Shown here one piece after another: positions 20,836 through 33,233 of a stretch of 64,000 nucleotides of DNA; within the stretch, counting starts at the first letter, position 1; each line of letters starts with the position of its first letter. The notes beneath the pieces were generated by a model. It searched no databases. It saw nothing but the letters and a program-made list of their open reading frames with translations, and was not told the DNA's origin. This DNA comes from Trichosphaerium sp. ATCC 40318 (taxonomy: Eukaryota > Protista > Tubulinea). The position numbers were made by a program, and so were the translations under genes. The stretch lies in NCBI GenBank assembly GCA_038496445.1, contig JALMLS010000138.1, positions 124,001-188,000 on the forward strand. Reading direction: 5' to 3'.

Positions 20836-21930
20836 TCAAAAAAGTGAAAAAGGAGTGAAGTGTTCTACAGGACGTACTTTTGTTTCATGATTTTCAAACA
20901 TCATTAGTTGTGGAGTTGCTTCTCCACACCAATTTGTACCACTTGTATATGTATGTAGTGAAAAATCATGAGATATTGCCAAGTAATGATGTTGCTTAGT
21001 AGCCAGCCCAAGATATCTTCCAGGTAATTGAATAGGTCGACTAGATTCAAAGTGCTTCATCCATGTACCTTCTCCCCATCCATACAAACAACCTTGGCTA
21101 TCAAATGATGCCTTGTAACCAGCATGCACAGAAACAATATTATCAAGTTCACTGATGATACCCTGCCCGTACAATTCATCACTTCCCAAGCCAAGACACC
21201 CACCATGGTTACATCCAAATGAAAAGACTTGTCCTGATTTTATAAGTACAAGTACAAAATCAATACCGATTGCTATATCAACTGCATCTGAGATTCTTGG
21301 AACATGTGATAATGTATTTGGTTTCAAAAATAGCGAGTTATTGAATGCCTCAATATTAGGTTTTCCCCAAAGAAATACGTGACCTGTTGTTGTTATAGCT
21401 CCACTAATATGACCATTTGTTTGTATTTTTACAATACTTTCCTCAAGACTCAAAATACGTTTCGGAGAGTGCAACTTCTCCTTATCAAACGAATGCCCCA
21501 AGCCATTATGTGAGTTGTCTCCCCAAGAATAGATATACCCGGATTGAGACAACGCCATACTCACTCTGTATGCAGTGACTTGAGTTATTTGAGTTAACAC
21601 AGGGACAATTCTCGGTTTCGAAACAGGTGACTTGAAGTGACCGAGACCTAATTCACCGTTACGGTTATATCCCCACGTGTAAACAAGACCATTTGAATCA
21701 GATGCAATGCTGTGTTGGTATCCAGCAGAAATACAGACGATATTTACGAGGGATTTTATTGGTTTAGCGATAGATCTCTCTATTTGGTCTTCATTACCCA
21801 ATGTGCCGTAAATATTTGATCCCCACGTGTAAATAAAGCCATCGTCAGCGATCGCCATAGAATGTTGATAACCTGGCGCTAAACGTTTAACATACTTTAA
21901 ATTAACCTCTTTACAATGAGGTTCAGCCAT
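20836..21930 (-). CDS. RCC1-repeat protein
   Basis: Repeated GYQHS.A...G.VYTWG.N..G.LG blades. Confidence 0.9.
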   Translation of the reverse strand: MAEPHCKEVNLKYVKRLAPGYQHSMAIADDGFIYTWGSNIYGTLGNEDQIERSIAKPIKSLVNIVCISAGYQHSIASDSNGLVYTWGYNRNGELGLGHFKSPVSKPRIVPVLTQITQVTAYRVSMALSQSGYIYSWGDNSHNGLGHSFDKEKLHSPKRILSLEESIVKIQTNGHISGAITTTGHVFLWGKPNIEAFNNSLFLKPNTLSHVPRISDAVDIAIGIDFVLVLIKSGQVFSFGCNHGGCLGLGSDELYGQGIISELDNIVSVHAGYKASFDSQGCLYGWGEGTWMKHFESSRPIQLPGRYLGLATKQHHYLAISHDFSLHTYTSGTNWCGEATPQLMMFENHETKVRPVEHFTPFSLF

Positions 21931-28024: not shown

Positions 28025-29441
28025 ATGTCGGCGTGCAAGTACGTATTATATTACCAAGTAATCATTAGTAACACTTGTAAGCGATTGTATCGATTTTAAT
28101 TGTATGCCTCCTGAAAATAATCTAATGACTCTTCCTGTTGAAATGATTACGCTAATCATCACTTCCTCTGTGCTCAGCACTATTGATATTATGAAATGTC
28201 GCTGTGTTTGTACTTTCTTACACAGCATTGTAAATACAACGAATATAGGAACGGTACGCCTGTCGCAACACGTTTTTTAAATTATTTTTGCTGTTTTTGC
28301 TAACTGTGCACGTGTTTCTTCCTAGGATTTATTCAAAGAGCTTGTATTCGATCATATCGCTGGTTCTACGGTTGGTTTTATTGATGGAGATGCTTTAAAC
28401 GAATCTAAATTTTTATATCTGGGTGGTTTAGCACGAGACCCTATAAACAAGGATAATGTAAGCAGCATCGAAAGTTTTACGGTTTCATTTATTTTCGGGT
28501 AAAAAAAACCGTAGGTTGAGAGATATCGTCATTTTTTCTTGTCTCGTTATTTAATCGTTTAGATAATGCTTCTGGACGAAGACAACAATGCTATCCGAGT
28601 ATTAAACGAGAAGACAAACAGCGTATGGACTTTTGCAGGATCTAGAGCGTTTGCAAATAACGCGAAAGCAGAAAGTATAAAAACCGTTAGAAATATCGTT
28701 GGGTACAAAGATGGTAAATGTTCTGATGCAATGTTTTTTCGTCCAAGACATCTCATTTGTGATAAATCTAACGGACTAATGTACTTTCTTGATTGTTCAA
28801 ACCTAGCAATTCGAAAAATATCCGTAAAAGAAAACTACATATCCACAGTAATAGATAACTCATCAAGCTTCTTAAAAGACCCTTTCGTAGGTCCTTACTT
28901 TACTGAACTAGCTGCAGCTTGTCTTGATGTTAATGGAGACCTTCTTATAACCGATTCTGATAGTATACGCCAAGTACATATAACAAAAGATCCGATAACT
29001 ATAAGTACATTAGATGTTACTATTGATAAAAAAGGAGGTAGTAAACATAGCAGATATATTAGATCTATATGTGTATCAAAGACAAAAGGAGATATTTATT
29101 TCCTTTGTAACTCTGATAAGATATTTCACCTTATACGTTCAGAAAAAGGTTCACATGAATGTCACGTGTTTATGGATTTTGTTAAAAGTATAAAAAGAAC
29201 CAAAAGAGGTAGGTGTATTGATACATGGTGCTTAGCTTTTGATAGAAAAGGTGACTTGTATTGTTCTTGTACAGGATGTATTTATAAGTTTTATTTAAAG
29301 ACTGGTAGATATGTTAAGCTTAGGTTATGCGATGTATTAAAAGGAGAACCTATAACACAGTTACATTTTGTTGGTGATGATATGTACCTTATTGTACAGA
29401 ATCATATGAAGACAAGTAGAGTATTTAAGATAGCGTTGTAA
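28025..29441 (+). CDS. F-box plus NHL-repeat beta-propeller protein (4 exons)
   Basis: MSACNDCIDFNCMPPENNLMTLPVEMITLII..DIMKCRCVCTFL (F-box), then IAGSTVGFIDGDA..F, GYKDG..AMFFRPRHL, N.AIRKI (NHL repeats). Confidence 0.8.
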
Positions 29442-29704: not shown

Positions 29705-30763
29705 TCATTCAATGTGTGGTGCCTCAAAGTGAGATTCTGACATGGTTGTGGGGAGCTCTTGAGGCTCGGAACTGTCAGCATTGTAGCCGGGGTTGGTAGG
29801 CGGCATAGTTGGGTATAACTGCTGTGTTGGTTCAGCGTCATCTTTGTCATCTGGCTCGGCCAATGGGTGGGAATCTACTTCGGTCGGGGTGGGTTCTTTC
29901 GTTGGCTGGGTTTCGACCGTTTTTTCGGCCAGTTCTGGTAGATTCAAATTTACTGTTGGCTTGCGATTCCTTGGGTCGAGTTCTGGTAGGTACAGGTTTT
30001 TTCTTTTCTTTTCCTCCGGAGAAGCGTAAAGAAGCTTCAGGCTTGACATCTGTTTACTCAATTTTTCTTCTTCCTTCCTCACTGACGCGATGTTGGTGGT
30101 TACTGATTCCATCATTACACTTAGTGCTTGTGAATATTGCTTTGATTTTTCGTTTTGATCGTCATAATCCTTGACCACGTTGTAATTTTCTTCATTCACG
30201 TGCGCTTTGAACTTGGCAAAGTTACCTAGAGCCTTCATGTTTTGAGCTTCGATCAGAAGGTTTTGGAGGTCGTCATACAAGTTTGATTGAAAGTCATAAC
30301 TACCTTCGAAATAAAAAGACGGTTTCATGTTCGCATCTCCCATCGAGTACATGGCGTGATTTTCGAGCTGGAATAAGTACTTGACGGTCTCTGCGTATCC
30401 AAACTTTACAATGACGCAGTATGGTGGCTTGAAGATCATCACATTGGTATTTTTGAGACAAAATTGATCTTTTTCGTTTTGAGCCATTGCTGTCACGAAG
30501 TGACAAAATAGTTCCTCAAAATCGTTTCGCAGCTCTCGTATCTCCCTTGTTATCTTGCGACAAAAGGCTTTGAGCTCTATCAGGGCGAGTGACGGTCCGT
30601 GGTCGAGCATACAGATACTTCTTGTTAACGTGTTCAACACTGTAACCTCTAGCTCTTCGCCAGGCAAGATGAGGTCGGTTATTTGTTTCATTGACGAATT
30701 GTCGACTTCTTTTAACCGCTTGAGCCACGTGCGGTTCTGTATGGTTAATTTATTACCAGACAT
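29705..30763 (-). CDS. Intronless GC-rich orphan protein (352 aa) with coiled coil and Pro/acidic tail
   Basis: Long uninterrupted ORF with GC content visibly above its flanks. No family recognised. Confidence 0.7.
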   Translation of the reverse strand: MSGNKLTIQNRTWLKRLKEVDNSSMKQITDLILPGEELEVTVLNTLTRSICMLDHGPSLALIELKAFCRKITREIRELRNDFEELFCHFVTAMAQNEKDQFCLKNTNVMIFKPPYCVIVKFGYAETVKYLFQLENHAMYSMGDANMKPSFYFEGSYDFQSNLYDDLQNLLIEAQNMKALGNFAKFKAHVNEENYNVVKDYDDQNEKSKQYSQALSVMMESVTTNIASVRKEEEKLSKQMSSLKLLYASPEEKKRKNLYLPELDPRNRKPTVNLNLPELAEKTVETQPTKEPTPTEVDSHPLAEPDDKDDAEPTQQLYPTMPPTNPGYNADSSEPQELPTTMSESHFEAPHIE

Positions 30764-31095
30764 GCGGTTGGTATACGTTCTAGCTTTTAGGAACTACAAT
30801 AATGTATCTTGACTTTTAGGAACTGAACGGAAAAAAAGTGGCCTTCAAAGAAAGTAAACAATCACATTTTTACACAACAAATAAAATTCTCTATTGAAGT
30901 GAAACGTTGTTGCTTTGTTTGCTTAAGATGTACTCAACGAAAAGGTCTATCGTTGGGTGTTCATGATACTGATTATAAGCAATTATTACGCGTTTAAGGC
31001 CATAAAATAACTTGAAAACTGAATACAAGTGATAGTTATTTATTTATCAGAAAATGGGAACCACGTGACTACACTGTCGAACGTTGAAGGAGTAT

Positions 31096-32191
31096 TCAAC
31101 ATACTTTCCGTATTAAAGACCTATGGATATGAGGAATAACACCACAAGCAGGTAAAACTGCCTCGGTGGTTAAGCCGTCTAACTCTTCATCGCCACGAAC
31201 TGCCATAAAGATATGACGTGGTATTATGCGTTTAACTTTCAAGTCTCTAGATGCATTGCCTGCCAATTCAAGTACCTCAGCTAAAGTAAATAATTAGTTC
31301 GTCATGCAAAAAGCTTGGCAAAAAAGAAGAAAGACTTACCAACCAGGTACTCTAATACTGCTGATAAAAAGACTGGCGCAGTCGCGCCAACACGTGTTGA
31401 TAGTTGAGACTTTTCTTTAATATGCCTGTGTATGCGTCCCACCTAACCAAAAAAAGAGATAAGCGTCGAACGTTATTAGAGGCAAGATGAAAAACGTACA
31501 GGAAATTGAAGCCCTGCTTTAACTGCTCTTGTAACGTTGCCAATGTGAGCTGTTTTAGGGCCTGCTGTGTTGGGTGTAGAACTATCACTGGCTAGATACT
31601 TTACTACTGCCTAGGTGTAAGGGTAAGCATGCATTGTAGAGTACGTAACAGAGTAGAAACCAGTAGTTGTTTTTCAACAAAACAAAAAACTTTGATATTT
31701 TTTGTGGTCCGTACCTTTGTTCCTTCAGATACACCATGCTTACCGAGTTCACCAGGTAGCTCAAAACGTGTTGCTAAGCAAAAACTGATTAGAAGAGTTT
31801 TCGCGTTTTCGAAGAAAGAGGATTGCTGTGTTAAACACAACGCTACGAAACCGCGTGAATAACTTTATTTATGGTACCTGTCATGATATCCCTTGAGTCT
31901 AACGTTTTTTTTTTGTCTTTGGATAATAGTTCGTCTGCGCTGTTTATAAGCCTATGTTACAGAGTAAGCGAGCGAATAAAAACAATTTAACAGCGTGTAA
32001 CCTTTTTTCCATATCGTATACTACGAAATCGTTAATAAGCAACGCAACAATCTCTACGATAGGATGGTAGTACCAAAACTATTCATTATTGCCATAGCTT
32101 TATTGGAGATACCAAGATCAGGGTGAACTTGCTTCAGGACCTTGTAAATGTATGTGGAAAATGTTTCAACTCTTCTTCTGTTGCCTCTCAT
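31096..32191 (-). CDS. Single-chain histone H2B-H2A.Z fusion (histone doublet), 222 aa, 7 exons
   Basis: Exons 32191-32074, 32020-32002, 31951-31878, 31773-31715, 31610-31500, 31442-31340, 31280-31096 (669 nt, all GT-AG, in frame). H2B part: [60 protein letters not shown]2A.Z part: [64 protein letters not shown]. Confidence 0.92.
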
Positions 32192-32270
32192 GTTCGTTAC
32201 CGGAAGTATGATGGCTTAAGCAATAGTGACTTGTCACCTAATTTTAAAAAAGGTGTTGTTACCACGCACA

Positions 32271-33233
32271 ATGTCGAAACCGAAATTAAAGATAACCGCA
32301 GCACGTAAACTTACTGTAGAAACTCCAAACTTGCTATTGATGCCTCTTGAGATACTGTTAAAGATTATGATAAATACAGACTTTAAATGTCTTGATTTGG
32401 CGTCGTTACAACAATCCAATCATTTTCTAAACGATACAATACGAAACAACCAAGATTACATTTACCGACATTTATACATCTTAAAATGGGGCTCCGATGG
32501 CGAAGAAATAGAGGCAGCATGCCATAGAATAATACAAAGTGATTTGAAGAGACGTACTACCCATAAACCTAGAGTACACTGTGCTAAGACACAAGCATTG
32601 GAAACTAGGACTCACACTACAAAAATACCTCCAACTTTGTACAATGTCAATGCAGTCACGTGGAAAGAAAAATACAAGAACAAACTTGTTCCAAATATCG
32701 TTGCTGAACTGACATGTGACAAGCCATACGTTCATAGAGGACAGACACTTATCTTCAAACTTACACTTCAAAATATTGGCAGATCCATAGAGACATTGTA
32801 TATTGATTACGATTATAATTGTAACGGTATTGAAGGTGGTAATGTTATAAATACTTGGAAGTCAACAGTATCTGGTAAGACAAAATATTACGGGTTAGCA
32901 CATGCACAAGAATTTTTGGTTCCTATAAATCAAGGAGAAACAAAGACATATGGAATACGTCTTCTCTTTGAAAAATCCAAGCCATCACTCTTTGTACAGT
33001 ATCCGCAAACAAAGTCACGAATTGAAGAGACATTTTCTCTTCAAGGTAAGATAACACATGTTCTCATTGCTGATGATAAGACACCGACTGTTTTTTCTAT
33101 TCAACTGTATGCTAGAGTTAATGTTGTTACCAAATTAGAAGAGAAATATACTCATGGAAGAAAAGTTTACGGACATTGTTCAGTGGTTATTAGCAACACT
33201 TTAAATATCACTTTTGATAAGTCACCGCTTTAA
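32271..33233 (+). CDS. Intronless F-box protein (family member B)
   Basis: LLLMPLEILLKIMI..CLDLASLQQSNHFL; VAELTCDKPYVHRGQTLIFKLTLQNIG. Confidence 0.85.
   Translation: MSKPKLKITAARKLTVETPNLLLMPLEILLKIMINTDFKCLDLASLQQSNHFLNDTIRNNQDYIYRHLYILKWGSDGEEIEAACHRIIQSDLKRRTTHKPRVHCAKTQALETRTHTTKIPPTLYNVNAVTWKEKYKNKLVPNIVAELTCDKPYVHRGQTLIFKLTLQNIGRSIETLYIDYDYNCNGIEGGNVINTWKSTVSGKTKYYGLAHAQEFLVPINQGETKTYGIRLLFEKSKPSLFVQYPQTKSRIEETFSLQGKITHVLIADDKTPTVFSIQLYARVNVVTKLEEKYTHGRKVYGHCSVVISNTLNITFDKSPL

Follow-up and report, generated by a model that had tools for sequence, protein, structure and literature searches.

A spliced nuclear gene of Trichosphaerium sp. encodes an H2B fold joined to an H2A.Z-type fold in one reading frame

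The window analyzed here, a stretch of 64,000 nucleotides from the genome assembly of Trichosphaerium sp. ATCC 40318, contains a minus-strand gene of seven exons and six introns (complete coding region, 31096..32191), in which one spliced mRNA encodes a tail-less H2B fold, a 26-residue linker and a tail-less H2A.Z-type fold. We consider it reasonably probable that the gene is functional in the nucleus and that its product is a variant histone, H2B-H2A.Z in a single chain. Histone doublets have already been confirmed in giant viruses and among engineered proteins; new in the present case is a doublet of the H2A.Z type that is an expressed, intron-containing nuclear gene. According to a 2022 review of viral histones, fused doublets in eukaryotes were unconfirmed, the animal candidates examined being apparent annotation errors, although real eukaryotic fusions could not be rigorously excluded (PMC9145170). 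In the literature searched, no core-histone doublet of a cellular organism was reported as confirmed.

Gene structure, transcripts and genomic surroundings

The exons were joined from the window sequence. All six introns are of the GT..AG type (53, 50, 104, 104, 57 and 59 nt), and the 669-nt coding sequence is free of stop codons up to the TGA at 31098-31096, yielding a protein of 222 aa with a computed mass of 24.5 kDa and a pI of 9.8. The original prediction, made from the DNA alone, of seven minus-strand GT-AG exons that include a 19-nt micro-exon and form one 222-aa ORF was thus reproduced.

Exon 1 (32074..32191, minus strand, as are all exons) carries the start codon, the peptide MRGNRRRV and the H2B fold from alpha1 to the start of alpha2 (Pfam Histone, 5e-06). 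The micro-exon, exon 2 (32002..32020), lies within alpha2, and both of its flanking joints are present in all four RNA contigs described below. The rest of alpha2 and loop L2 are encoded by exon 3 (31878..31951), which includes a run of ten A that forms KKK codons, and alpha3 and the beginning of alphaC by exon 4 (31715..31773). Exon 5 (31500..31610) contains the fusion junction, comprising the end of the H2B alphaC (AVVKY), the linker and the alphaN of H2A (AGLQFP). Exon 6 (31340..31442) encodes alpha1, the L1 loop, which is of H2A.Z length, and alpha2 of the H2A.Z-type fold, whereas exon 7 (31096..31280) encodes the end of alpha2, alpha3, alphaC and the docking domain (GDEELD, GVIPHIH), followed by the stop codon (Histone_H2A_C, 4e-05).

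In the resulting protein, residues 1-95 form the H2B histone fold, residues 96-121 the linker and residues 122-222 the H2A fold, which starts at AGLQFP, takes in the entire docking domain and closes with a short C-terminus, RKVC. Only the eight residues MRGNRRRV precede alpha1 of H2B, and the basic tail, some 30 residues long, that this histone typically carries at its N-terminus is absent, in agreement with the nearly tail-less H2B that had been proposed. The H2A half likewise lacks a lysine-rich N-terminal tail of its own and starts in exon 5 after the linker, not as a separate polypeptide. The linker itself had been correctly anticipated, but its length, put at about 20 aa, is 26 aa. The entire H2B-to-H2A junction is located within exon 5, so that the fusion does not depend on splice choice.

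The six introns show no similarity to one another and are not introner-like. In the H2A half, the intron positions of the window gene (FP|VGR and EYLV|A) coincide with none of those in the two comparison taxa, namely, Brachypodium H2A.Z (AGLQ|FPVG) and Spizellomyces (R|AGLQ and HIH|KSL). The full 222-aa product is absent from the protein collections, where it is represented only by a 154-aa MMETSP model from M69 (P0002).

Expression of the gene was traced in public sequencing data. A search found runs of the RNA type that contain approximately one third of the words sampled from a 1.5-kb stretch, a share that matches the expectation for a spliced transcript. Contigs of four runs, denoted X1 to X4, were aligned on positions 30900-32400; X1, X2 and X4 each belong to a different study and carry a different organism label, and X3 shares the label of X2 (organism B). 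X1 (662 nt), X2 (695 nt) and X4 (778 nt) each cross all seven exons as one record, with all six splice joints exactly where predicted (reading CT..AC on the plus strand), whereas the X3 contig covers exons 1-3. Every joint across the six introns, as well as the continuity of exon 5, that the original prediction had singled out for verification is therefore confirmed in X1, X2 and X4, and both halves are found in one molecule in each of these three contigs, instead of the split H2B and H2A.Z mRNAs that the prediction had named as counter-evidence. Given these single spliced contigs and the lack of a stop codon between the halves, an annotation or assembly artefact is ruled out, and the in-frame fusion inside exon 5 holds as proposed.

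The ends of the contigs delineate the untranslated regions. The 5' UTR (32192..32209, minus strand) is defined by the end of X4, which places the 5' end of the transcript at 32209, 18 nt upstream of the ATG. The letters beyond this point in X4 are the reverse complement of what we take to be the SMART template-switch oligo, and because the contig runs into the oligo there, 32209 is the probable cap site of the doublet mRNA. The 3' UTR (31026..31095, minus strand) contains AATAAA at 31044-31039, 13 nt short of the end of X4 at 31026; X2 ends at 31035. A scan of 30500-32700 against Rfam produced no match, the histone 3' stem-loop included. Because AATAAA is present and the histone stem-loop is not, the doublet mRNA looks like that of a replication-independent variant histone; the traits of replication-dependent histone genes, that is, lack of introns and a 3' stem-loop, are replaced here by six introns and AATAAA.

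The doublet ORF is intact over its seven exons in the genome, X1 and X4. X2 differs from the window by six SNPs, of which four are synonymous and two cause conservative replacements, M187L and, in the linker, A106V; this pattern, albeit one of small numbers, fits constraint. In addition, X2 carries one letter more than the reference (14 against 13) between 31427 and 31428, at the start of exon 6, and this +1 insertion, if real, would shift the frame after GRIH and truncate the H2A half. X3 has two extra letters in the A10 run of exon 3 (31904) that are found in none of the other three contigs. These indels in the low-depth contigs of organism B are either errors or real frameshift alleles, and they are unreliable because X2 and X3 disagree despite carrying the same organism label.

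The divergent neighbor of the doublet gene is an intronless, F-box-like ORF (32271..33233, plus strand; 320 aa from the ATG). The ATG of this ORF is located about 60 nt from the start of the doublet transcript, so that the two genes probably share a promoter; the 5' part of the F-box-like ORF is represented in the X2 and X4 RNA contigs. The C-terminal two thirds of its product have no Pfam match, and there are weak F-box/ApaG-like hints. Downstream of the doublet gene there are two intronless ORFs, of 352 aa (29705-30763, minus strand) and 291 aa (28566-29441, plus strand), neither of which matches any family, except for a sub-threshold Teneurin-NHL hit; the former has no relative in IMG/VR. 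Farther away, an intronless ORF of 364 aa (20836-21930, minus strand) encodes RCC1 repeats, and its best relatives among 5.8 billion proteins are about 23-34% identical and come mostly from environmental or bacterial contigs. No viral hallmark or virion domains were detected in the 26 window ORFs of at least 120 aa, a scan that intron-split genes could escape, and the GC content is flat over the 64-kb window.

Identity of the two halves and related doublets

The Pfam families PF00125 (Histone) and PF16211 (Histone_H2A_C) match the exon translations (exons 6-7) and P0002. The best PDB matches to the doublet are the engineered single-chain H2B-H2A.Z proteins (6k0c_D, 165 bits; 4nft_A, 156 bits), and H2A.Z chains score higher than canonical H2A chains (141 versus 113 bits). 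In a tree of 98 H2A domains, from which very long rows had been taken out, the split between H2A and H2A.Z has an SH-aLRT support of 97, and the H2A half of the window protein is placed with the H2A.Z-type sequences, on a long terminal branch (0.77). Across the L1 loop, FPV and EYL are spaced by 32 residues in this half and in 38 of the 40 single H2A.Z proteins, compared to 31 in all eight single H2A proteins. The H2A half is 66-70% identical to single H2A.Z, a low value for the H2A.Z family, 60% identical to H2A and at most 65% identical to the H2A part of any doublet. Judged by its sequence, the H2A half is of the H2A.Z type, and the identity originally assigned to it is upheld by the tree split, the L1 spacing and the level of identity.

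The H2B half, compared over residues 5-95, shows 60-67% identity: the doublets P0240 and P0214 share 66-67% of residues with it and human H2B 60%, protist single H2B being outside the sample. Alignment of both halves shows that the H2A.Z motifs GRIHRH.K, RVGATA, DLKVKRI and KVKRIIPRH are kept, together with the acidic patch (EYL..AEVLE and GDEELD, and on the H2B side PGEL and SEG, within SEGTK), the docking motif GVIPHIH, the DNA-contact arginines and the C-terminal lysine of H2B (AVVKY). Retention of the acidic patch and of this lysine had been foreseen and is seen in the alignment.

Pfam Histone_ABTB appears in precomputed lists, yet a scan at E 0.001 did not reproduce the match, and no link between BTBD11 and the histone fold was found in the literature searched.

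A profile-free search with exon 7 against 1.8 billion representative proteins retrieved P0002, the product of the window gene itself, ordinary H2A.Z proteins and three true H2B-H2A doublets (P0013, P0014 and P0052). A wider set was then obtained by a profile search with the alignment of these three doublets combined with domain mapping. It consists of 54 proteins with the H2B-then-H2A order, two engineered human chains included; fusions from animals and plants named in NCBI were set aside. Every doublet that could be placed on a long contig (P0014, P0214, P0216 and P0264) lies amid dense intronless genes in a giant-virus-like setting, and these contigs also encode an 1870-aa Rpb2, DUF5832, DUF5889, PARP_regulatory and MORN domains, and a second doublet.

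Two such settings contain more than one histone fusion. In L006:1315-4286, the H2A.Z-like P0014 accompanies an H2A-like H2B-H2A doublet, and the L006 contig encodes an H4-H3 doublet as well; in L007:10001-12031, the H2A.Z-like P0214 is found close to a second doublet of 404 aa. Such pairs of H2A-like and H2A.Z-like doublets on giant-virus-like contigs would be a viral counterpart of the split between canonical and variant histones.

Doublets were also identified in the transcriptomes of cultured protists, namely, Vermamoeba vermiformis (P0156) and Pyxidicula operculata (P0208), both in EukProt, and an MMETSP organism (P0164). The uniqueness that the original prediction attributed to the window gene is therefore overstated, given that other cultured protists express similar H2B-H2A doublets. 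P0164 (L011:17-925), from a GC-rich organism, is encoded on a 975-nt contig with a terminal poly(A) run; between its two folds, part of the alpha3-alphaC segment of H2B is repeated. P0156, P0052 and P0161, from Vermamoeba and related soil contigs, share a C-terminal tail of about 110 residues with FG/GF repeats and an acidic end; we know of no histone tail that resembles it. In an environmental doublet, P0244 (JGI, a 1252-nt contig), the H2B half matches human H2B at 87% identity and the other half human H2A.Z at 83%, and the doublet groups with single H2A.Z; this is either an independent recent fusion, of animal-like or other eukaryotic origin, or a chimeric contig.

Searches of IMG/VR, the JGI contigs and the protein libraries yielded no close orthologue of the window doublet. 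In a DNA-level scan, the best matches are 51-64% identical, and the best full-length protein match is P0214, at 60-63%. An exact search of the JGI contigs for the spliced junctions gave no match, and a search of IMG/VR with exon 7 recovered just two giant-virus doublets, with 43-47% identity.

Comparison with the known systems brings out both shared and distinct features. Doublets of giant viruses (H-beta/H-alpha of Marseilleviridae and those of metagenomic Nucleocytoviricota) have the same H2B-then-H2A order, a short connector and a basic composition, and some viral contigs, such as L006, pair an H2A.Z-like with an H2A-like version. In contrast to these, the window gene is nuclear, contains six spliceosomal introns and is accompanied by no viral genes among the scanned ORFs; furthermore, giant-virus doublets often lie beside an H4-H3 doublet, whereas the window contains no other histone. 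With the doublet of Marseillevirus, the window doublet has an identity of just 29-43%, compared with 53-66% per half for the eukaryote-like metagenomic doublets. P0156, P0208 and P0164 resemble the window doublet in their H2B-H2A(.Z-like) order and in having the H2B tail replaced by a short basic stretch, but are only 53-65% identical to it per half; in the Vermamoeba group, moreover, the C-terminus continues into a long FG-rich tail and L1 is shorter.

Engineered H2B-H2A.Z chains (6k0c_D, 4nft_A, 2jss_A and 4m6b_A), some of which, among the PDB matches, were solved with partner proteins, have the same domain order with both tails removed, and the human construct is 58% identical to the window protein over 211 residues. 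Unlike these chains, the window protein is a natural product of a spliced gene, with a 26-residue linker and the whole docking domain up to RKVC. The resemblance to cellular H2A.Z encompasses the L1 length, the motifs GRIHRH.K, RVGATA, DLKVKRI, GDEELD and GVIPHIH, and a polyadenylated mRNA without a stem-loop; the differences are the fusion to H2B, the absence of the N-terminal tail with acetylatable lysines and the modest identity given above.

Origin of the doublet gene

In a tree of the concatenated halves, the window gene belongs to a cluster with an SH-aLRT support of 81 that includes P0214, P0164, the engineered human H2B-H2A.Z and the Vermamoeba group, with no resolved order among them. 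A position next to P0013 and P0257 in a quick H2A tree was lost in the concatenated and larger trees. Approximately unbiased (AU) tests rejected neither a single clade of all Z-type doublets (p-AU 0.80) nor a grouping of the window gene with all single H2A.Z (p-AU 0.76); of the two constrained trees, the former is better by about 3 lnL, a difference that is not significant. Doublets are found on both sides of the H2A/H2A.Z split, which implies that fusion, or replacement of one half, occurred more than once and makes a fusion in the host lineage plausible.

The original prediction described the gene as host-evolved. This is not borne out as such, because doublets of the H2B-H2A(.Z) type are common on giant-virus-like contigs and in protist transcriptomes, and the AU tests reject neither origin. 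We nevertheless lean toward cellular descent: the H2A half appears to derive from a cellular-type H2A.Z, and the fusion itself arose, somewhat more probably than otherwise, in the host lineage. The main competing explanation, which is less probable but has to be taken seriously, is a domesticated doublet of the Nucleocytoviricota, whereby a viral H2B-H2A.Z-type gene entered the nuclear genome of a host rich in introns, gained six spliceosomal introns and is now expressed by that host. This scenario draws on the viral-like settings, with Rpb2, second doublets and the H4-H3 doublet, of all doublets on long contigs, on the location of the best full-length match, P0214, on one of these contigs, and on the single clade of Z-type doublets, which the AU test did not reject. 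The H2B half is also closer to P0240 and P0214 than to human H2B, a comparison that is weak given that single H2B of protists are outside the sample. For the H2A half, the relationship is reversed, with up to 70% identity to single cellular H2A.Z against 65% or less to doublets. Moreover, the window gene keeps the L1 length of cellular H2A.Z, which most Z-type doublets lack, and both its halves are of canonical length, whereas P0214, its nearest viral doublet, has deletions in both. A viral gene would have had to gain all six introns, along with the micro-exon, after the transfer, and the surroundings, with flat GC, neighbor ORFs without IMG/VR relatives and no viral hallmark domain in the window ORFs, likewise argue for cellular descent.

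Another viral source would be a mirusvirus, either integrated as an endogenous element or kept as an episome. Mirusviruses are rich in introns, count histones among their core functions and are actively transcribed in the nuclei of protists (PMC12768974). We regard this origin as highly improbable, considering that composition is uniform over 64 kb, that the neighbors are F-box, RCC1 and other host-like genes, that both neighbor ORFs searched in IMG/VR lacked relatives while exon 7 led to giant-virus doublets instead, and that no virion or other viral domain came up in the scanned ORFs, notwithstanding the intron-split genes that could have escaped. A different kind of alternative concerns the status of the gene rather than its source. 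The locus could be transcribed but decaying, as a pseudogene in part of the population, or could encode a histone mimic outside chromatin that titrates chaperones or serves F-box systems. A decaying copy could account for the +1 insertion of X2, which would halt translation past the linker, and for a divergence unusual for H2A.Z, and the divergent pairing with the F-box-like gene is compatible with a mimic. Such a copy is unlikely, however, because the seven-exon ORF is intact in the genome, X1 and X4, the DNA-contact, acidic-patch and docking residues are kept, the synonymous and conservative changes in X2 point to constraint, and the indels of the organism-B contigs are inconsistent between runs.

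Proposed function and implications

For a functional single-chain H2B-H2A.Z, the conserved features suggest the following mode of action. The H2B and H2A.Z folds would pair within one chain to form a ready-made dimer, which would dock on the (H3-H4)2 tetramer through the conserved docking domain, and deposition would be independent of replication. With the H2B partner of H2A.Z fixed and both modification-carrying tails gone, the resulting nucleosomes may differ in stoichiometry and in how far they can be modified. For the doublets of Marseillevirus, assembly into nucleosome-like particles has been reported (PMC8357426). Because viral doublets assemble in this manner and structures of engineered H2B-H2A.Z have been solved, the single-chain architecture is feasible, and a nucleosomal role of the doublet protein can be tentatively proposed from the residues that it retains.

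Fused histones bear on the evolution of the H2A-H2B and H3-H4 pairs of eukaryotes and on whether the histones of giant viruses are ancient or borrowed. The doublet gene is a tractable cellular case: it is nuclear and intron-rich, its fusion point is exonic, and spliced transcripts from three independent studies support it. It makes it possible to ask directly whether the chromatin of a cell can work with a hard-wired, tail-less H2B-H2A.Z dimer. Eukaryote-like doublets of the H2A.Z type occur in giant viruses next to those of the H2A type, and the window gene provides an anchor for asking whether doublets passed from protists to giant viruses or the other way.

It is conceivable, albeit rather doubtful at present, that the window gene is the first confirmed core-histone doublet of a cellular eukaryote, born in the host and acting in chromatin as a single-chain H2B-H2A.Z unit. 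If so, taken with the doublets that several amoebae express, it would indicate that cells have invented fused histones repeatedly, and protists would become a possible source of the doublets of giant viruses, which would then not be just a viral or pre-eukaryotic relic.
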